Source: Podarcis bocagei (lineage: Eukaryota). From it: DNA of 64,000 bases. The stretch lies in the NCBI GenBank assembly GCA_964188305.1, contig OZ076894.1, one strand, 5' to 3'. The translations under genes were made by a program, and so were the position numbers. This document shows positions 3,380 through 60,118 of the stretch, in pieces; position 1 is the stretch's first letter, and each line of letters starts with the position of its first letter. The notes beneath the pieces were generated by a model that searched no databases, had not been told where the DNA came from, and was given only the letters and a program-made list of their open reading frames with translations.

Positions 3380-4109
3380 CAAACTGCACAACCTTCAACT
3401 CAAATATATTTTAGCAAAAATATCCAACATTCTGCAAGGACTTCGGGCTGGAACTTTTCCTGTCCCCATGTACCCTCTAAATCTGTTCTGAGGGTTTCTC
3501 CAACCCTCTGGAGAAGATGTGGGGGAGGTGCAGGGGTACACAGAGAGAGGAGCAAAGGAAGTTCTGTTGTGCAAATGGCAATCCCTGTGCTAATGGAACT
3601 ACTTCATTCGACAACACCCTGACTTGCCCAATAGAGCCACCATTTCTTTGTGAGTCTAGCTGTATGGCTTTCTAAGTTGCCTACAAAACAGGAACCTTAT
3701 GTTGGAAATTTGGCAGGTCTAACCCCCTGCAAGGGTAATTGCCCGAGAGCAAAAAATTGCCCTCTTTCCTGTCGTCTGTGAGCCCAGGTAGATGTGATGT
3801 TAAATGCACATTTGTATTCCATATCCATATTTTAAAAATGCAGATGACAGCTGCTGGGGAAAGCCAACAATTACGGAGACTGCTGGAGTAGGAGTTTCAC
3901 GCTTTCCTCCACTGTTGGAAATCACTCCTCCAGAGCTGCTCTTTGCCTTGAGAAGGAGGTTAGCAAAAATTTGCCCACCCTACATATGAAATAGAGGAAC
4001 TCCTTTCCTTTTTCACAAAAGGAAATTGTGCTCAGTGCTACCTTTATCTGGTTCTCAGGACTGCACTGTGCATTCTGGCACCACCTTTTTAGTGATTGTC
4101 ACTGCCATA

Positions 4110-4260
4110 GAATCATAAATTTGGGCAGGCTGCCTAGTCCCCTCCCCTGCTTGATGCAGAAAATCCAGAGCTAGAGCATCACCAACAGATGGCTATCTAA
4201 GGAGGGGGAGCTCATCACCCCTTTAGGTAGTTGGTTCCATTGTCAAGCTTCTCTTGCCCA
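4110..4260 (-). mobile_element. CR1 LINE 3' fragment
   Basis: CATAGAATCATA tail and the GGTTCCATTGT block, similar to 29117-29540. Confidence 0.5.
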
Positions 4261-7250
4261 TCTCAGTCGCTGATAGAAATGTTGATGGGTTGGACAGAGC
4301 CATGCTCAAAATAGGTCATGTGTTTCATGGGCAGAACCCTACATGCAAGTAACTGTATGTGTGGTGGCTCTGTTCAGATGTTCAACCAATATAAGTATTG
4401 TTTATGGACTCTGCTGTTTTTCTGCCTATGTATGTGAATTGCATCTGAAGACCTGAATGGGGCTTACATATCATATCACACACAGTGCCTTCATGAAGAT
4501 GTTTTAAAATTGTTTTATCTGTTTTTAATTGTTTTGAAAGGGTTTTAGTATGTTTTTATTTTGTTCTGGATATTGTTGTTTTTAATTATTGCTTTATTAC
4601 TGATGTGTTTGCTGCCTTGGGCTCCTTTGTGAGGAAGGGAAGGATATAAATTTAATAAAACAAAATAGAGGCCCTTTTAATTATGAATGGTTCCCCCCCA
4701 GCCATTATTTCATTTGGGGAAGGGGGAAGGGGCCTGGGAGCCATTGTCATAACAGCCTTTGGATGATTTTAGATTCTCTATCACTGGATCAATACCTATT
4801 GACTGAGAAAGGGCTTATGGCACACCGTGGGGGGACAACCCTGGGAATTATTATTACCTTGTACAACCTGCACTAAATATGTTATGTACCTAAGTTGTGT
4901 ACCTGCCGACTACCTGTTTGGCCTCTTTTATGAATGCTAAGCTCACAAAGATTCAGAATCAATAAAAACAATTTCTGCAGGGAAAGGAGAAATGTTATTA
5001 GGGAAGTTGAAATATGTTTTTGCATTAAAGTGTCTCTTTTCCTAGATTATATGGATATTTTGGAAACAGGACTGCCCACGTTCAAAAATAAAACAAAATC
5101 CTCCAACGTACTATAAAACTTCTTTCTCCAGGAGAGCAGACTATGTAGAAGAGAGAAAATGGTTTTCTGGTGAAGTAAATGTACAACAAACAACATTGTG
5201 TACACTAATTCTGGGCTGAAGGCTGCTCTCTGCAGGGAATGAATAATGGCAGGGCAGCCATCTAACAGCACCATCTAACTTTCACGTGAAAGCTCCAATA
5301 TCAATGAATTTGCTCCTAAGCGCCTTCTGTGGTTTCTGAGATGCCGCGGCTGTAGCCTGATATTCTACCCAATGGTAAAATTAGTAGAACTTGAGTTCTT
5401 GAACTCTTGGGGTGAAACTAGACCTGCAGCACCAAGGAAAAGGTCACAAAGAAGTTAGCAAGATTTTGAGTTCATCAAAACTCTTCGCCGGAGCAGATGA
5501 TACACATAAAAAGAAAGGAAAGGAGCGGGGAAAGACTGTTTTAGAGCAAGATGGAGAAATGCTTTTCAGGTTGAAATGCTTTTTAAGACAGAATGGTGGA
5601 GGTTTTACGCAGACCTAGTTGGTTCTGGTCAATGTTATCCTACTTCTAATGGGCCAGCATCACTATGTGAAATCTTGTAGACTACTTATTATCCCAGTTT
5701 ACTACACATGCTTATGCTACACAGAAACCATTAACTGTTTCCAATGACTAAGGAAGTTTACATTGTTTTCCACATGTAAAATTTGCCATGGAGCATCCTT
5801 GTATTTTCTTAAGTAGGTGAGGTTGAATTTTATCTGTGTTCTCATCCACTGCCAATAATAATGCCCATTTTGGATTCCTTTATGCACCTTGCAATGGCAT
5901 CCCTTGTATACTGGTCACACCATCTGTATGCTCATATGAAGTAGGCTTGACATGTAACTTTTTTTTTTTTTTTGCATGCTTCTTGTCCATTTTTCACTAT
6001 GGAGAAGGGTGTAGATGAAAATGCCATGCAGAGATGGAAAATGTTTCAACCTAAATGAATTCAAAATGCACTTAATTCTAAAACTGCTCTAAAAACCTTT
6101 TCTTGCCAGATTATTGATTTAAAAAGATAGTTGGCAGAGGCTTTCTGATTCCTGAGCAAAATCTTCCCCAGAAATTGTTAATTATGATTGTTAATTGCAA
6201 TTGTTAAGACCAAAAAGGTTACCAGCCTTTATTATCCACACACTCCATCATGCATAGATTTGGTCTGATTTCTTATCTGGGGACAGAGCTGGCTCATTTG
6301 TGTAGCTTGCTTTTATGGGTGATTTAAATGTATTTGCTTGCTTGGAAGTCTGATCCTGAAAACTAACACAAATCTAATCACCCAGGTTATAAAAGCAATC
6401 AGGATAGATTCCATGTTTGCTTATTTTACCAAAATCCATGCAGTGACGGTTGTGTCCACACCCCACACAATCTCTTTGGGAATGCAAGCACTAACACACT
6501 GCAGCAATGGACAACACTTTCAAAATAATAAATCTCAGTGTGGAGACGATTTTAATTGCTTCACATTTGGGAGCTGCATTTTAAGGAGACATACAGATCC
6601 CATTCCAGTAGCAGTGGTGTGTGAGGAAAGCCCGATTATGGATTTTGCATTAACATCCTATTTTGTAGAAACCCCGTTCTCTTCATTAACAAAACATAGT
6701 CCTGATTTGTTTCATGGCATTGCTGCTCTTTTGATTTATGAGTCTGTTATTGTAAGAATTGATTACTGCAACTCTGTTTGAGCTGGTTTTGCTATAAATA
6801 ACTATGTGCCACATTTAATAGGTTTTCCAAACAATTCATGTTCACCTGATATGGGTCAGGAAGCCTAGTAATATTTCTTCATTTCCCTCTTAGGCTTCAA
6901 AATATCCATGTTTACTAGCTGATAATGTTTAAAAATCTTGAGAATGGGTTCCAGGGGTTTGTTGTTGTTTTTTGTCCTTTATGTCAGATAATCTCAGTAT
7001 CATTTTAATTCGCTTGTTAAATAGCTTCTTTTCCTGTTCTCTGCCATAAGCCTTTTTTTTTAAGACAGACTTTTAGCTTACAGTGGAAGAAATATTCATT
7101 CACAAAGAATAGCACCTTAGGCTCCTTATTTCTAGATTTCATATAGACAGATTAATGAAACTTAACCATTTTTCTTCCAAATAAATAGTAAGTCACACAT
7201 TATGAAATTATCAGGCCACTCTGGGTGTCACCAAATAAATAAGTTTTGCT

Positions 7251-7422
7251 GGGGAAGGGCCACCGCTCAGTGGTTAGAGCAACTGCTTTGCACACAGAAG
7301 GGGCCAGATTCAATCCCTGGTGCCTCCAGGAAGGCTGGGAAAGAGCTCTCGAGAGCTGCCACTGCCAGTCAGTGTAGACAGCACTAAGCTAGATGGATCA
7401 GTGTAGGGCACCTTCCTGTTCT
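7251..7422 (+). mobile_element. tRNA-derived SINE
   Basis: A-box-like GCTCAGTGGTTAGAGC and B-box-like GATTCAATCCC. A related copy lies at 43788-44130. Confidence 0.7.
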
Positions 7423-7424
7423 GC

Positions 7425-7715
7425 AGTAAAGGCTGGCGGGGTATAAGGCAGAAAGACCAAAGTAGGCGGAGCCAGAGCTAATGACTTGTGCAATCACAGC
7501 CAATGACAGGCAGAGCCAACTAATTCTAATTTTGTCCCCACTGCCCTCCCTGCCGAGTTCTGCAAGGGCCACACTGGACTGAGGAGAAGGAAGCTGACAG
7601 CCAATGCTGGACCAGTTATAAGTAAGAAGGCAAGCAGGTGGGGGCTGGCTGAGAGGAGACCGAGATGGGTGGGGTAGCATGCCTTTCACCCTAATGGACC
7701 ACTCTCTCCTGGTAC
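7425..7715. repeat. Unclassified interspersed repeat; inverted copy at ~17575-17850
   Basis: GCAGAGCCAACTAATTCTAATTTTGTCCCCA is nearly the reverse complement of TGGGGACAAAATTAGAATTTGCTGGCTCTGC near 17750. Confidence 0.55.
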
Positions 7716-7992
7716 TCTGGATGTGCAGAGAAATTGTCTGGGGTTCCGTGCTACAGATGGTATTCCTCCACCTGATTTTGGGTGATTCTGCACTCTCTCA
7801 GTTAGGGATAGGAGAGGAAGTCTGATGTTCATGTGAACTGACCTGATTTGCACTTTGCAATACAATATGAAAACCAGAAAAAGCTAACCTTCAAAATCCG
7901 CTTGTCTCCAGATTTTGTGGCATGGTTTCCCAGCCAAATAATTTTTACCGACATGTTATGGGAAAGTGTGGATTAAAATGTGTGTACATCAA

Positions 7993-9226
7993 TGGCAGAA
8001 GGATATTTCGAAATTTGTTTGGCAGGGTAAAAAGCCCCGAATAAAATTTAACTGATGCAAAAGAAAGAGGGGGGTTTGCCCTGCCAGACTTAAGGTTATA
8101 TTATGAAGCTGCAGCCTTCTGCTGGATGAAAGATTGGTTACTTTTAGAGAACACTGATGTCCTGGATCTGGAAGGGTTTCATAATTCTTTAGGATGGCAT
8201 GCATATCTGTGGTACGACAAGGTAAAGACTCATAAAATGTTCAAAAACCATATTGTCAGAAAAGCAATATTTATGGTCTGGACAAAATACAAAGACTTAC
8301 TAGAAGGTAAGACCCCGAGGTGGTTATCACCAGTGGAGGCCAAGGCCCGAAAAAACCCCAATATGGAGGCCGGCTGGCTGAAATATGGGGAAATAATAGA
8401 AAAAAATGGTGACAATTGGAGGTTACAGAGCTATGAAAAATTAAAGCATAAGGTGCAAGACTGGTTTCATTATGCTCAAATTCAAGAGGTTTTTAAGTTG
8501 GACAAAAAAACAGGATTCCAGGTGGAAAAATCGAAATTAGAGACAGAACTGTTAGAACCAAAGGCTAAGGTACTCTCGAGAATGTATAACTTGCTGCTTA
8601 AATGGAACACTCAGGATGAGACAGTCAAATCAGCCATGATAAAATGGGCTCAAGACATTGGGTACAACATTATGTTTGAAGACTGGGAAAGGTTATGGAC
8701 CACCGGTATGAAATTCACGGCATGTAGTGCCTTGAAAGAAAATATTATGAAAATGATATACAGGTGGTACATGACCCCAGTCAAGCTTGCTAAAATATAC
8801 CATTTGTCTGATAATAAATGTTGGAAATGTAAGGAGGCTGAAGGGACATTCTTTCACCTCTGGTGGACCTGTCCAAAAGTGAAGGCCTTCTGGGAAATGA
8901 TCTACAATGAATTTAAAAAGGTATTTAAGTATACCTTTCCCAAGAAACCAGAGGCCTTCCTTCTGGGCATTGTCGGCCAGAAAGTGTTAAAGAAGGATAG
9001 AACATTTTTTATGTATGCAACAACAGCAGCAAGAATACTTATCGCAAAGCACTGGAAGACACAAGATTTGCCCACACTGGAAGAGTGGCATACGCAATTG
9101 ATGGATTATATGGAATTGGCCGAAATGACTGGCAGAATCCGAGATTTGGGAGAAGAGATAATGGAGGAGGACTGGAAAAAATTTAAGGATTATTTACAAA
9201 AACATTATAAGTTATATGAATGTTAA
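7993..9226 (+). pseudogene. L1 ORF2p C-terminal remnant (post-RT region and Cys/His knuckle)
   Basis: WQKDISKFVWQGKKPRI, then a frameshift near 8050, then ERGGFALPDLRLYY and an open frame to 9226 including CWKC-x8-HLWWTC. Confidence 0.9.
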
Positions 9227-9592
9227 TAATTTGCATGATTTGGAAAATCAAGCTCCAGCAATAAGATTTTGTATATTGGAAATTAAGATATAACTATGAA
9301 AGGATTAAAGTTTAAAATAACACTGTATTTATTTTAGGGCAAAAACAAATTGATAATAAGTATTTTGAACCCAAAAGAGAATTATTTGAAAGTATTAATA
9401 ACACATGAAACAAGGTATTAATTTGCTGATATTTTTATTGTAAAGAAAGCAGGGTGAGGGAGACGTGGGGAAGTCCAGTTGGTTATGAAAAAATGTATTG
9501 GAAAGTTGGATTTCTTTTATTCTTCTTTTCTTCTTTCTTCTTTTGTTATCTGACTTTATATTTGTATCTGGAAAAAAGTAATAAAATAAAAA
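7993..9592 (+). mobile_element. 5'-truncated L1 LINE (young)
   Basis: 19-bp TSD TAAAATGTGTGTACATCAA at 7974-7992 and 9593-9611. Contains the ORF2 C-terminal region, a 3' UTR, AATAAA and an A-rich tail. Confidence 0.95.
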
Positions 9593-29540: not shown

Positions 29541-30366
29541 TAAGGCTGTTATATATCACTTAGTCTGTAACTGCTATAACCATTCATATTTCTTTGTCTA
29601 GATTTTTTGTGATTTCCTCCCCTCCACCAAAGTATTTGGTTTTACCATACATATCTAAATGGCACTGCATTTCAAGAGTACTTCATTTCATCCCTTAGAA
29701 CAAACTTTATAGGAAAAAAATAGTGTGAGCAGCATTTATACCGCTCCTCAGACTCTTTCCCTGCCACATGTTACACCATCATTTAACATTTTGCAGAATT
29801 TAAAGGTGCCATATATATACCAAGCAAATAAACAAGTGAAAGTTGGAAAGCTTTTTTTTTCCAGTGTCTGCCACTTAAGAAGGTATGTCCTGTTCTGCAC
29901 TGCATGTTTTGTAATAAAGAGTACTACATTAACATTGTATGACTGCTGTCCCTCCTGGGATCTTCACAAAAAACTCCTGTAGATGTTTATCTCTTATGAT
30001 GTTATCTCATTGAGCAGCTCTTTAAAATAAACTAAGTGTGGCTTATGTAGTTGTAGTGAGAATCTGCCTGGTGGCTATTTTGATGTAAACACCTTTGTGT
30101 CTAAACACTGATGGCTTAGGGATTCTGAATTTTGCATCTCCATAGGAAAATGCCAGATACAATTGTTCTTACCTTTTTGTTTATGCTACATCTGTTTTAA
30201 ATCCTATTTACCACCCTTCTCTTTGCAATTTAGGAAAGATGTTGCAAACATCTCTGACAGCCCCAGTAATGTGTTGGCCTAGAAAGTCTAACCCAGGCAC
30301 TGTCACTCCTGGGTAAGAGATTAGCCCTGATTAGCAGAGTATTTCAGGGAAGAGAAAGACTGGATG

Positions 30367-32497
30367 GATTTCCGGGTTAGCGCCTCCGGCAATGGCGGAT
30401 TTCCTCTGATCGGGAGGAATCCGCTCTGTGGAAATTAGGGTCTGGACCACCACGGCGAGGCGGAGACCCATTAAAAACCACAGGCGGGAGAAGCCTGTGG
30501 ACGTGGGATTCGGCTGGCACCTTTTGCGCCTCCCCTACTTGCGGGGAAACCCGGTTTCAGGGATCCGGAGCGACGTGGGGTGAGCGGCGCGGTGCTTCGA
30601 ATCGACTGCTTTTTTCACGGAGTGAAGCCGCATTGCTGTTGTCGGAGAGCGCTGACTTTTTCCTGTGGACAATTGGACTCTAAACAACTACCCGTGAGTA
30701 GAATGGAAAATTGGATCTCTAAACATCTTAATTTGGCATCAAAACGGGAAGGTTTCAAACAGGAAGTCTGCCTTCCTCTTTTGTAAATAGATTAAAGCAA
30801 AGACGTTGCAAGCTAAAGTCTGGAAAGTCTTTTGTAAAGAATTAAATCTCCATCGGCTAAAATTACTAAACCTCCCTTGGAAGCAGGAGAAGAGGGGGAA
30901 AATTTTAGATCGTTCAAGCCTGCAGGAGAGAGAGTGAAGAAAGATAAATTACCACCGTTTCGAACCTGGGAACGGGCTGCCAGTAAGATTGATGTTTTGG
31001 GAAAGTTCATTGACTGTGAATAAAACATATGTTGACAGACAGTTAAATAAGAGAAATATATTGCTTCCATTGTTTCCTTTTGCACTTAAAAAGGAGCAAA
31101 ATAGTAACTGAAAATCGAAACTAACTTTGTTGCTGGATCTGCGCTTAAAAGGATGGATACAAATAGAAATTGTTTCCCCTAGAGGGAGCTTTTGAAACTG
31201 TTGCAGGAGTGGAGCTGGGGAATTTTCCAGCTGCAGAGATTAAAGACCGTGAGAATCAGAGATTGACCTTGGACAAGAATTTTGACAGAAGAAGCCTTAG
31301 TGATTGCATTTTGCAAGACAAGTGCTTTATTGGAACAGCTTCATGAGAAGACGGATGTGATGATTATTAAAATTGACAATTTGGGACAAAAAATGACTGA
31401 TTTGGGACAAAAAGTGAATACCTATTCAGAAACTACTCAGGAATTGATTCAGGAATCTGTTTTGACATGGCAAGCTGTGGAGAAGACGAAGGAGAAAGTT
31501 GTTGTTGAACCTCGAGTAATTCAAGTGGAGAGAGCCCCGGCCTCACAGAGGCAATTTGATGAACATAAGCTGTTGCCTTTTACGATCGAATCTAGAGAAA
31601 GCCAGATTTGGTGGGATGGAGCCCTGCTTGGATTGGAGAAGGAAAGTTGGATAGATCCTCTTATGCAGGGATGTTCTGGCCTTTGGGATCTGGATTTGGG
31701 TCAGGGGGAGATTGGCGCTCTGAAATATCTTTTGGACTTTAGTTCTGACTATGGAGAATGGGCTGACCTGTCAAGAAGGAATAAAGACATTGTTAGGTTG
31801 GAGTTTCCCTGAGATCTACTCCTCAGTGCCAAAGGAAGGAAATTAAGAACAAGATCAGCAGAAGATAAAGTAAAGTGCATGTATAAATATGAAGAAGATC
31901 TGCAGAAGGGACATGGAAAAGAGTTAAGAGCCTTGGACAGAAGGTCACCAGGTTGATGGACCATATGGAATTGATAGAAAGGACTGACAGAATCCGAGAC
32001 CAGGGAGAAGAGACGGTGGAAGAAGATTGGAAAAAAAGGTTTTTTAAAAAAATTATTTAGAGAAATGTTGCAAAATTAATGAGTGTTAGAAAAATGTTGG
32101 AATGAAATTATATGGCTTTAGTAGAAATGTTATAAGGAGTTAAGTATAAATAAGTTTTAGGGTTTTAATGGTAAGATAAGGCTAAAATAAATTAAGATAA
32201 TTAAATGACAGAAAACAGTGAAAGATGGAAAGGATTTGCTGAAATAATTAATAACTAGAACACAAAAAGGGAGGTGTGAGGAGGTCGATGAAACAAGTTA
32301 ATGAAAGATAAAAATATGGAAATATTGGATGTGTTTTTAATTGTTTTTTGCTTTTGTTTTTGTTTTGATGTATTGTGTCTTTTGCTTTTTTTGATATGCA
32401 CTGTAATGTATTGATTTGTATCGTTTATTTTTTTCTCTTTCTTTTTTACTTCTTTCCTTAATTCTTAAACTTTTAATAAATATTTTTTTTTAAAAAA
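30367..32497 (+). mobile_element. Full-length non-autonomous L1 derivative (HAL1-like), 2.13 kb
   Basis: 17-bp TSD AAGAGAAAGACTGGATG at 30350-30366 and 32498-32514. CpG-rich 5' end with AATGGCGG. The 3' ~550 bp is homologous to the end of ORF2 and the 3' UTR of the L1 at 45508-46689. Ends in AATAAA and an A tail. Confidence 0.9.
31282..31812 (+). CDS. Putative ORF1p-like coiled-coil ORF within the non-autonomous element (start uncertain; first in-frame ATG at 31360)
   Basis: 176-codon open frame. The N-terminal half is heptad-like (LEQLHEKTDVMIIKIDNLGQKMTDLGQKVNTY) and includes a 21-bp, one-heptad duplication. Confidence 0.4.
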   Translation: MTEEALVIAFCKTSALLEQLHEKTDVMIIKIDNLGQKMTDLGQKVNTYSETTQELIQESVLTWQAVEKTKEKVVVEPRVIQVERAPASQRQFDEHKLLPFTIESRESQIWWDGALLGLEKESWIDPLMQGCSGLWDLDLGQGEIGALKYLLDFSSDYGEWADLSRRNKDIVRLEFP

Positions 32498-33158
32498 AAG
32501 AGAAAGACTGGATGAATCCTCCTAAGAAGAGCCTGCTGGATCAGCCACAGGTCCATGTAATCCAGTATCCTATTCTCACAGAGACCAACCAGATGCATAT
32601 GGGGAAGCCTGACTTCTAGACTCTAGTTTAGAAATAATCCAGTTGTACTGGATTATGTTCTAACAGGGACCATTGCTGCACCTTTTGCTGGGGGTGGGCT
32701 TAAAGTGTTATTATCTAATTCATATAATGCTTATATGCAAAAGTGGCTTCTAAGCAGTTTACAACTATAAAATCCATCATAAAATTGACACATAATTAAA
32801 ATACACAATAAAAATTCCACCAGAGTAGAAAACATCCTTAATTAAAATATACACTAAAACAAGCCAGTTAAAAAGCATGGCAATCAAAACAATTGGGAAA
32901 CAGTTAAAACAATAAGATCAGAAGTTGTTCAAGGAAACTTGACAGATGTTCTTTCAGGAGCCAGCGGTATGCCAGTACTAATGGGCCTCTCATATATTAT
33001 CAGGGAAGTTATTCCACAACACTGGTGCCACCAGTGAAAAGGCCACATCTATGTCACCACAAGCTGATAATCATTGGGCTGTGGCAAAGTGAATGGGTTT
33101 CATCTGCTGATCATAATCCCCTTATTGGGCACTGGAGGTGAAGACAGCCTTTCAAGTA

Positions 33159-44130: not shown

Positions 44131-45507
44131 TAGTAACTATGTGCAGCATGGGCTTCCTATTGCCAACATTTTCTTCTTTTCCTGAGCTGTCATTCCGCCC
44201 CCCGCTTTTTCATCTAAAGATAAAATAAAGATTACAGCTAGACAGTAAACACAAAGGTATTCTTATCCCCTTCAAGTCCTTAATTTTAACACATTTTCAC
44301 ATATAATTTGTGAAATGGCTGAAAATGTGACGTTTTGCAGTGAGGTGCTGCTATGCATGTCAGAAACATTTTCCTGCTAGCAGAGCTTCCTTCATTTCTT
44401 TGTTTTTTTTCAGTCACAGCAATGCCATCCCATGAACTAAAAGGAAAGGAGAGGCAAATCACTTCTGAACCACTAGTACTATTTTACCAGTAAAGCTAAT
44501 GAATTATCCACATACTGACTGTTTCAGAAGTTCAAATTAAATAATAAGCAGTGAAAGGTTCAGTAAGGTATTGAATATTACTCTTACACTTTCTTTCATG
44601 TGGCAACATTTCAAACAGTCCATCATCATTTGGGTTTGGAGTTGCAGGGGCATTAGGTAACCTCTTCAAAATATGAGAAACTTCAAGTTTTGATTCTGTA
44701 CAAGGTTTTCTCTTGAAGGTGCTAATTAAAGGGCTTTGTGTAGCTATATCCCACCTACCCTGAAATGGTTCAATAATGTTGATATTTTGTAGTTATAAAG
44801 AGGCAACAGCTTTGATTCTTAACAATAGGATGGGAGGCAGCAAACAAGCTACTAGGGAACATTAGTGGGAGAGCCAATGTCTCACTTGGTCACCCTGTAG
44901 GCTTCTGTTTGACCACTGTGGGAGCAGAATGCTGGACCAGATGGAACTTTGATCAGATCCAGCAGGGCTCTACTTATGTTTTTGTGTACATGCAAATGTG
45001 ATTCTGATTTTACACTTGGAACCTGACCAAATTCCTGCATTGAAAACTATTCTTCAGGGACAGAATGGTGGTGGTGGGTCTCAAATGTCACAGCAGATGC
45101 ATGGAAGCAACATCTGCAGCCATTTCAATCCCACCTAAACAATATTATTTTAATTGGGAGAAATATTGAGGGTACCTCCGAACTGTCATTATTTTACAGG
45201 AAGGATTCAAACATACTGAAAATTTAGGTTTGTGGATTACAGTGCTTGCTTCTCTAGTGTCACAAGTCTGCTTTAAAAAAGAATAGAACTTTTGCAGTTT
45301 GAAAAGTGTTGGAAAAATGTATTGAAAAGGGTGGGGTGGTGAATGATGTATAAACACTTCACAAACAAATCAGAATTAATGGAGGATGAATGATCTTTGT
45401 CTTATAACTGTCCTGGAAACAATTCAGAGCATTTGCTCAATAAAGACTGAATATAATCTAACCTCTGTGAAAGCTTTGTGCAAGGAAACCAAGATGAACG
45501 CTCAATA

Positions 45508-46689
45508 TTGGCTCCATTATCACCAAATAATGGAGGCATACAATTTGGACAAAAAAATTGGTTTCCAGGTGGAAAAATCAAAATTGGAAACAGAATTGTT
45601 AGATCCAAAAATCAAGAATTTGTCAAGAATGTATAATTTGCTGTTGAAATGGAATACTCAGGATGAAATGGTGAAATCAGCTATGATTAAATGGGCACAA
45701 GATGTTGGACATAACATAATGATGGCTGACTGGGAACAGTTATTGACCACAGGTATGAAATTCACGGCATGTAATGCCCTAAGAGAAAACTTAATGAAAA
45801 TGATTTATAGGTGGTACATGACACCAGTCAAGCTTGCAAAAATCTACCATTTGCCCGATAATAAATGTTGGAAATGTAATGAGACTGAAGGCACATTCTT
45901 TCACCTTTGGTGGACATGCCCAAGGATTAAGACGTTCTGGGAGATGATTTATAACGAAATGAAAAAGGTATTTAAATATACCTTCCTGAAGAAACCAGAG
46001 GCCTTTCTCCTGGGCATGGTCGGCCAATTGGTGCCAAAGAAGGATAGAACTTTTTTTATGTATGCACCAACAGCAGCAAGAATACTCATTGCGAAGTATT
46101 GGAAGACGCAAGATTTACCCACCCGGGAAGAATGGCAGATGAAGTTGATGGACTATATGGAACTGGCGGAAATGACTGGCAGAATCCGAGACCAGGGAGA
46201 AGAGTCGGTGGAAGAAGACTGGAAAAAGTTTAAAGACTATTTACAGAAATACTGTAAAATTAATGAATGTTCAAAGAATGTTGGAATGAAGTTATATGGC
46301 TTTAGTAGAAATGTTATAAGGAATTAAGTATAAATAGATTAATAGAATATTAAAGGAAAAAATAAGGTTAGAATGTTAAGATAATTATAGGATAGAAAAC
46401 AGAGGAAGATGGAAAGGAATTGCTGAAACAATTAACAGAAGTGGAATACAAAAAGGGAGGTGTGAGGAGGTCGTTGAAATAAGTGAATGAAAGATAAGAT
46501 ATTGAAATTATTACCAAATAATGTTTTAAATTGCTTTTGTTTTTGTTTTGTTAGTTTAATGTGTTAGTGTTTTGTGTTAGTGTTATGTAGTGTTTTTGCA
46601 TTGCATTGTATTGTCCATTCTTTTTTTGTTGTTTTTTGTAGTGTTTGAATTGTTGGAAAAGCAATAAATATTATTTAAAAAGAAAAGAA
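45508..46689 (+). mobile_element. 5'-truncated L1 LINE (young)
   Basis: 17-bp TSD AAGATGAACGCTCAATA at 45491-45507 and 46690-46706. Open ORF2 C-terminal frame with CWKC..HLWWTC, then a 3' UTR, AATAAA and an A-rich tail. Confidence 0.95.
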
Positions 46690-47160
46690 AAGATGAACGC
46701 TCAATAAATAAGTAGTCTGGAGGAGCCATAATGATAGGTATAAGACTGTAAGTAGCTATGTGTTGCAGAATACTGCACTGTGCTGACCCATATTAGAGCA
46801 TTATCTGGCTGAGGGCTTATCCATACTTCCTCCCCCAGGTAAAACTGCTCTTTAGTGCTCAATTAGAGCAAATGGCAATGGGGTTTGCCATGGATTGATA
46901 TTTGTTCTGATTTAAAGTTAGAGGGTGGGGTTTCCCTGGAAAAGGAGAAGAGCAAGAGGAATGGACCCATGCCTAGAAAGTGTGGGTCAAGTGGAAAATC
47001 ACTTAGACCCATGGTCTAAATACAGGACAGGTAGAAGTGTGGATGAACCCATGCTTGGAGAAAATGATGCTCTATTGAAACAGTATATCTGCAATATTTG
47101 TGGCCAGGGTTCCTCATAATTCTGCAGGTGTATGTCATTAACTGGGGCCATTGTGGACCA

Positions 47161-59918: not shown

Positions 59919-60118
59919 NNNNNNNNNNNNNNNNNNNNNNNNNNNNNNNNNNNNNNNNNNNNNNNNNNNNNNNNNNNNNNNNNNNNNNNNNNNNNNNNNN
60001 NNNNNNNNNNNNNNNNNNNNNNNNNNNNNNNNNNNNNNNNNNNNNNNNNNNNNNNNNNNNNNNNNNNNNNNNNNNNNNNNNNNNNNNNNNNNNNNNNNNN
60101 NNNNNNNNNNNNNNNNNN
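59919..60118. other. Assembly gap (200 N)
   Basis: A run of exactly 200 N, probably an arbitrary scaffolding spacer. Confidence 0.98.

Follow-up and report, generated by a model that had tools for sequence, protein, structure and literature searches.

The 64,000-nt stretch of contig OZ076894.1 of the lizard Podarcis bocagei (assembly GCA_964188305.1), hereafter the window, contains a 2,131-bp unit (positions 30,367–32,497; all features described here lie on the plus strand) that is a structurally full-length insertion and that keeps a reduced form of the first open reading frame (ORF1) of LINE-1 (L1; LINE, long interspersed nuclear element) and no functional second frame (ORF2). We designate it a half-L1, and it is very probably an insertion of a half-L1 family of lacertid lizards, a non-autonomous lineage derived from L1. 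The unit is bracketed by two copies of a 17-bp target site duplication (TSD; AAGAGAAAGACTGGATG), at 30,350–30,366 and 32,498–32,514, that are identical in 17 of 17 positions; chance is ruled out as their source because the 17-mer is repeated perfectly at a distance of 2,148 bp, precisely where an L1-type unit begins and ends. The evidence for other members of the family comes from a chromosome of Podarcis lilfordi (OX395127.1; L003) and from contigs of other public sequencing runs (L001, L002, L004 and L005), and an L1 relative used for comparison lies in L006 (GCA_027172205.1, CM049768.1).

The element starts with GATTTCCGGGT, followed after 14 nt by ATGGCGG, and its first 300 bp contain 26 CpGs, with a GC content of 0.58–0.60 and a CpG observed/expected ratio of 0.67–1.39. 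This CpG-rich, L1-type 5′ terminus (30,367–30,670), the presumed internal promoter, is recognized by its CpG count, its likeness to the L1 consensus and its alignment with the P. lilfordi copy, to which it is 73–81% identical and equal in CpG counts. The remaining L1-derived 5′ untranslated region (5′UTR; 30,671–31,278) aligns to the 5′UTR of L003 and, with 77–79% identity, to the L1 5′UTR in L006, the leader as a whole spanning 915 bp (30,367–31,281). A first-pass annotation of the window, made from its sequence, had noted the perfect TSD around a 2.13-kb unit, the CpG-rich 5′ end and the leader of about 0.9 kb, all of which we confirmed; its proposal that the element keeps a promoter of its own is not borne out, as the likeness to the consensus and the alignments to L006 and L003 reveal instead an ordinary lizard L1 5′ terminus and UTR.

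The leader is followed by a lost start codon (31,279–31,281) and by the first part of a frame derived from ORF1 (31,282–31,809, 176 codons), comprising a coiled coil, a diverged start of the RNA recognition motif (RRM), a deletion of the RRM core and a remnant of the C-terminal domain (CTD). A premature TGA (31,810–31,812) interrupts this frame, which reads on for 47 codons, through the end of the ORF1 CTD (31,813–31,956), to a second TGA (31,954–31,956); this rest of the frame corresponds by alignment to the C-terminal portion of canonical ORF1 proteins (ORF1p) and to the lizard proteins P0005 and P0008, and P0005, P0008 and P0009 all terminate at the second TGA, the family stop. At the deletion junction (31,951/31,952) the ORF1-derived end meets a tail derived from ORF2, of which only the last 60 codons remain (31,952–32,143), out of frame and non-coding due to an 8-nt insertion plus stops. 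The L1 3′UTR-derived tail (32,144–32,491) includes an AATAAA signal at 32,475–32,480 and leads into a short A tail (32,492–32,497) of eight A in all, the last two of which also form the beginning of the TSD. Together, the perfect 17-bp TSD, the AATAAA and the A tail are hallmarks of an L1-type insertion by target-primed reverse transcription. As first annotated, the 2,131-bp unit holds no endonuclease or reverse transcriptase sequence, for which it is too small, and Pfam detected no enzyme domain in it. Likewise, Pfam found no domains in the scanned ORFs of at least 110 residues elsewhere in the window.

The window copy is best read, from its sequence, as a dead insertion unable to make the family protein. 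The codon at 31,279–31,281 is ATT, whereas L001, L003 and L004 start with ATG at this point and the canonical ORF1 of L006 has an internal ATG there; the first ATG in frame appears at 31,360, and the TTG proposed as start in the ORF listing is an artefact of the bacterial genetic code used for it. The premature TGA corresponds to CGA in L002 and L003 and is thus a CpG transition. The same TGA is found in L001 (926–928), only distantly related to the window copy, probably as a result of recurrent CpG decay at a single site. The 176-codon ORF of the original description, open from 31,282 to 31,812, is therefore a broken remnant, since it lost its start and suffered the CGA to TGA change, and retains 176 of about 224 codons, the family ORF having a length of about 200–224 codons. 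The CpG island is undecayed, with 27 CpGs in the first 300 aligned columns in the window and L003 copies alike, and this island and the perfect TSD would fit a fairly recent insertion.

Relation of the reading frame to L1 ORF1

An exhaustive HMMER search with the window ORF against 1.84 billion representative sequences retrieved seven matches, and all of the significant relatives except P0003 are ORF1-type proteins from lizards; P0003 is unrelated, a coiled-coil repeat protein of bacterial origin that carries a glycosyltransferase domain. The matches include short forms of 174–212 residues (P0001, E = 4e-18, and P0005) that align end to end with the window ORF, as well as canonical lizard ORF1p, namely P0002 (2e-17; first exon), P0004 (5e-8), P0006 (3e-5) and the C-terminal part of P0007. 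Further short forms, P0008 (201 residues, annotated as "hypothetical protein" in P. lilfordi), P0009 and P0010, emerged from a profile search. The identity of P0006 as an ORF1 product is deduced from its context and its best match in the PDB: in contig L007 its gene is followed, 8 nt downstream, by an ORF2 with an endonuclease-like N-terminus, and the PDB match is human L1 ORF1p (2ykp, E = 0.005). A word-index protein search with the window ORF and an exact look-up of its ATG-started version gave no match, Pfam recognized neither the window ORF nor, at E ≤ 0.01, canonical lizard ORF1p and yielded for the former only weak coiled-coil matches, and a PDB profile search with a mixed alignment returned coiled-coil matches only.

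Two of these proteins have a particular gene structure. The model for P0002, in the 3,900–9,300 region of L006, splices the N-terminal part of ORF1 to a fragment of ORF2, in a region that also contains parts of at least one other LINE, and has the appearance of an artefact of annotation across nested repeats; our comparisons relied solely on the initial, contiguous ORF1 portion of this model. P0007 (422 residues) is a predicted protein with a RING/B-box, TRIM-like N-terminus fused to the RRM-CTD part of an L1 ORF1, and reflects either an L1 ORF1 exonized within a TRIM gene or a chimera created by annotation.

The joint alignment of the short forms with canonical ORF1p is colinear. The coiled coil is kept in the short forms and the start of the RRM is strongly altered; a gap of about 40–53 residues removes the RRM core in all of them, leaving an incomplete RRM, and the alignment resumes at the end of the CTD, of which only the last part is aligned. 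Canonical ORF1p extends some 35 residues beyond the end of the short forms, and the N-terminal ~50 residues of ORF1 are also gone from the half-L1 ORF. The alignment thus places one limit of the deletion close to the end of ORF1 and the other 60 codons short of the ORF2 end. We had also considered an ORF ending at the start of the RRM, ahead of a large deletion, and rejected it, as the alignment to canonical ORF1p carries the frame to 31,956. As far as can be judged from sequence comparison, the window ORF is thus a cut-down L1 ORF1, with its coiled coil kept, the RRM core deleted and the end of the CTD retained. The diverged ORF1-like protein of the first-pass annotation is then homologous to lizard ORF1p, as it had been proposed, but is missing the core of the RRM.

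The AlphaFold2 model of P0008 contains a single long helix over residues 4–66, with a predicted local distance difference test score (pLDDT) of 75–88 over the first 40 residues, in agreement with a coiled coil; the mean pLDDT of the model is 47.8, and it is below 50 from residue 66 on, including the CTD part. The coiled-coil region of the window copy carries a tandem duplication of 21 nt, or one heptad (31,379–31,417; NLGQKMT/DLGQKVN), opposite a 7-codon gap in most other members; it is absent from L001, L002, L003 and L005, and L004 has a 7-codon repeat of its own at the same place. The length of the coiled coil seems, from these sequences, to change by whole heptads.

Family membership and maintenance of the frame

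The P. lilfordi chromosome contains a half-L1 of 2.09 kb (at ~5,080–7,173 of L003) that starts with GACTTCCGGGG...ATGGCGG, shares with the window element both the arrangement of its parts and the junction, and ends in an A run followed by a TSD of ~18 bp (AAAGTATGACTCA[C/A]GCGA). This copy is 68–71% identical to the window element in the 5′UTR, the ORF and the tail. The junction is also spanned by two of four public contigs of ~1 kb from other runs (L002 and L004), and the other two (L001 and L005) carry the ORF; overall, the family copies differ from the window element in about 30% of their DNA. The junction is then not unique to this locus, and the proposal of a squamate non-autonomous family with ORF1 as its only gene is upheld by its presence in a TSD-flanked P. 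lilfordi copy and in public contigs. Internally deleted L1s do exist in these genomes, as illustrated by the nested, rearranged region of L006 that joins the N-terminal part of ORF1 to the C-terminal part of ORF2; nevertheless, the recurrence of the same junction, the same gap in the RRM core and the same size in the P. lilfordi insertion and in contigs with ~30% divergence leaves only a very slight probability that the window element is a one-off deletion copy of an L1 that failed to spread.

The half-L1s share derived characters in the ORF and in the tail, from which we infer a single origin. All the short forms have lost one codon and show the changes E>G, L>W, F>P and K>G in the RRM remnant, none of which occur in canonical ORF1p; likewise, the half-L1 tails share GGACTGACA and GATA, whereas three L1 tails contain TGACTGGCA and GGCG/GGCC.

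Additionally, to judge from the pattern of indels and stops, the frame has clearly been kept open across the family. The indels between the deep lineages are all multiples of three (6/6, 6/6, 4/4 and 6/6), and simulated neutral divergence predicts 8–10 in-frame stops where 0–1 are seen (P for one or no stops ≤ 0.0012); the value for the window lineage, which was found without a protein database, is 0.0012.

Several results weigh against a family of this kind, or at least against a protein-coding role for its ORF. First, its abundance is judged from genomes and runs other than that of the window. Although 20 sequencing runs from eight organisms hold 8–64% of the queried 31-mers, this sharing fits an orthologous locus or a young multi-copy subfamily alike and cannot separate them. 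Second, the UTRs of the window element are closer to those of the L1 relative in L006 (77–82%) than to those of the L003 half-L1 (68–71%), which a simple clock-like tree of single origin would not lead one to expect and which needs unequal rates or recombination with L1s. Third, the other ORFs of the family were retrieved via protein databases, which are biased toward open frames. Fourth, the dN/dS ratios estimated with the NG86 method (0.31–0.39; Fisher p from 1.6e-4 to 7e-8) are only slightly under those of the two off-frame readings (0.40–1.16), and the differences between the window and L003 copies are evenly spread over the three codon positions (60/57/66, p = 0.71). The same count showed an excess of third-position changes in two positive controls, the ORF2 C-termini of the two other L1s of the window (31/22/88, p = 1.5e-12) and canonical ORF1 (67/57/99, p = 0.0015). 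We thus make no claim of purifying selection from the NG86 ratios, since the off-frame and codon-position controls point mostly to a bias of the method. Given the even codon positions and the off-frame ratios, a function-specific protein is not demonstrated, and the amino acid sequence of the half-L1 ORF is barely constrained.

The similarity of the window UTRs to those of the L1 relative would also be expected if half-L1s arose repeatedly from full-length L1 RNAs, as dead-end by-products of a deletion hot spot or of splicing like that giving rise to the spliced integrated retrotransposed elements (SpIREs) of human L1, and the ORF2-side breakpoint is indeed preceded in L1 by AG. Even so, we consider recurrent formation highly unlikely: the derived substitutions, the codon loss and the tail changes are common to the half-L1s and missing in the L1s; L007, the one canonical L1 available for this comparison, reads ...CACCTG|AC at the ORF1-side breakpoint, with no GT donor; purines abound in the L1 upstream of the 3′ breakpoint, so that this stretch would be a poor acceptor; and a frame that stays open through many in-frame indels implies descent under selection.

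The open frame in several lineages, and the annotation of P0008 as a protein in P. lilfordi, could also be taken as signs of a host gene or of a domesticated gene derived from ORF1. There is hardly any chance of this: the copies lie at unrelated loci, each within a retroelement that is flanked by a TSD and ends in poly(A); the start codon of the window copy is lost and its frame is cut short by a stop; and the constraint on the amino acids is weak.

The half-L1 family that we favor probably arose from an L1 that lost the final ~35 ORF1 codons, the spacer and almost the whole of ORF2, and we propose the following cycle for it. Transcription would start at the internal CpG-rich L1 promoter, and the RNA would be reverse-transcribed at a nicked target by the ORF2 protein (ORF2p) supplied in trans from related autonomous L1s; the machinery would have to be borrowed from complete L1s because the copying enzyme has been lost. 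Either the act of translating the ORF or the coiled-coil protein made from it would help the RNA to reach the ORF2p machinery. What matters in the ORF could be either a generic property of the product, such as a trimerizing helix, or translation itself. A more elaborate proposal is that of a long-lived squamate half-L1 whose open frame is selected while its amino acids are loose, in which ribosome transit or a generic coiled coil, rather than a specific activity of ORF1p, would act with the retained tail to bring the RNA to ORF2p. We regard it as unlikely in its entirety; if true, lizard L1s would be open to parasitism via features of the RNA or of its translation acting in cis, beyond poly(A) alone.

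The 3′ tail and the other L1 copies of the window

From position 31,952 on, the element matches a truncated L1 at 46,144–46,637 with 79% identity over 508 bp. In this L1 (45,508–46,689), a 5′-truncated fragment that consists of the C-terminal part of ORF2 plus the 3′UTR and has the closest L1 tail in the window, the match covers the last 60 codons of ORF2 (46,145–46,327), and not some 40 as first annotated, and then continues into the 3′UTR; a 25-mer noted earlier is present in both tails. The fragment, of 1.18 kb, has its own TSD of ~17 bp (AAGATGAACGCTCAATA; 45,491–45,507 and 46,690–46,706) and an intact C-terminal ORF2 frame. It had been put forward as the likely partner of the half-L1; this 5′-truncated, dead fragment, with only 79% identity in the tail, is an ordinary dead-on-arrival copy, and it shows that a related subfamily exists in the genome but not that this subfamily drives the half-L1. 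A second 5′-truncated L1 (8,126–9,590) belongs to another subfamily, and only its ORF2 end resembles the half-L1 tail, the 3′UTR being different.

The tail is homologous in all the half-L1s and in the L1 lineage of 45,508–46,689 and L006. It could be retained as a recognition element if the lizard L1 worked in the "stringent" mode, with the half-L1 keeping, and perhaps updating, the tail of its driver. This would agree with the retention of ~550 bp of the L1 3′ end in all half-L1 lineages, with the resemblance of the window tail to the local L1 tail, greater than that to the tails of other half-L1s, and with the conservation of a block (32,075–32,131) that is non-coding in half-L1s and is 84–88% identical to L003 and L004, 69% to L002 and 91% to the L1 tail. 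However, RNAalifold did not find a conserved fold in this block among six tails, a small sample with low power (−0.15 kcal/mol and a single pair with changes on both sides), and Rfam gave no match. Moreover, identity to the sole L1 tail of this type in the window reaches only 79%, and the tail is whatever lay beyond the deletion. The suggestion that this L1 recognizes 3′ sequence thus finds no support here, and we hold a recognition role of the tail to be rather improbable; its retention follows simply from where the deletion ended.

As separate observations, the 25-mer (32,255–32,279) contains GGAGGTC, which can pair with the first seven bases of the element (30,367–30,373, GAUUUCC) through five Watson-Crick and two G-U pairs, a 7-mer match expected by chance about once per two tails. 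The motif also aligns with GGAAGTCC in the 3′UTR of the other L1, at 9,469–9,476. Elsewhere in the window, positions 59,919–60,118 are a run of 200 N, corresponding to an assembly gap or a masked stretch.

Comparison with known systems

The L1 consensus from clade 1 of Anolis starts with GACTTCCGGTG-N8-ATGGCG, and these L1s have long, CpG-rich 5′UTRs (Boissinot and Sookdeo, 2016; PMC5381506). The half-L1 and the lizard clade-1 L1s are alike in the motif at the 5′ terminus, the long CpG-rich 5′UTR, the AT-rich 3′UTR and the coiled-coil ORF1; they differ in that the half-L1 has no endonuclease or reverse transcriptase and its ORF1 is truncated internally and at both ends. In addition, 14 nt separate GAYTTCCGG from ATGGCG in the window and P. 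lilfordi copies, as compared to N8 in the Anolis consensus.

Pairs of a short interspersed nuclear element and a LINE that share their 3′ tail, with recognition of the stringent type, are exemplified by UnaL2/UnaSINE1 of eel (PMC3747384). As in these pairs, the half-L1 is non-autonomous and has a 3′ end in common with an autonomous LINE from its own genome; in contrast to them, the shared tail is a leftover of a deletion and not a module captured on an RNA polymerase III head. In the few tails compared, six in number, RNAalifold found no conserved 3′ stem-loop, with low power. With the SpIREs the half-L1 shares the absence of an internal L1 segment at a recurring junction, whereas no canonical splice sites are evident at its breakpoints and the shared derived changes point to one deleted ancestor.

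The closest parallel is provided by the mammalian HAL1 elements, non-autonomous derivatives of L1 reported to have originated independently several times (Smit, 1999; Bao and Jurka, 2010, as cited in PMC5753468). The lizard element has the attributes of a HAL1-type element: an L1-type 5′ end, a single gene that derives from ORF1, the absence of ORF2, TSDs and a poly(A) end that reflect target-primed reverse transcription, and independent insertions of the same structure; both would presumably be moved in trans by L1. Conversely, the half-L1 derives from a lizard L1 lineage and its nearest protein relatives are lizard ORF1p, its shrunken ORF1 has lost both the N-terminal ~50 residues and the core of the RRM, the final 60 ORF2 codons persist as a non-coding tail, and its frame is open while the amino acid sequence drifts, HAL1 being compared here by its published description. 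The lizard protein relatives suggest that the half-L1 arose independently of mammalian HAL1. We found no description of HAL1-type elements from lizards or snakes in the open literature, Repbase and Dfam being outside the scope of this search. The value of this one locus is modest, with a copy that is dead for coding; nevertheless, a reptile counterpart of HAL1 bears on which parts of ORF1p are needed by an L1 parasite, as the coiled coil and an open frame were kept and the RRM core was not, and offers a natural system for the study of trans-mobilization in genomes with many coexisting L1 lineages.

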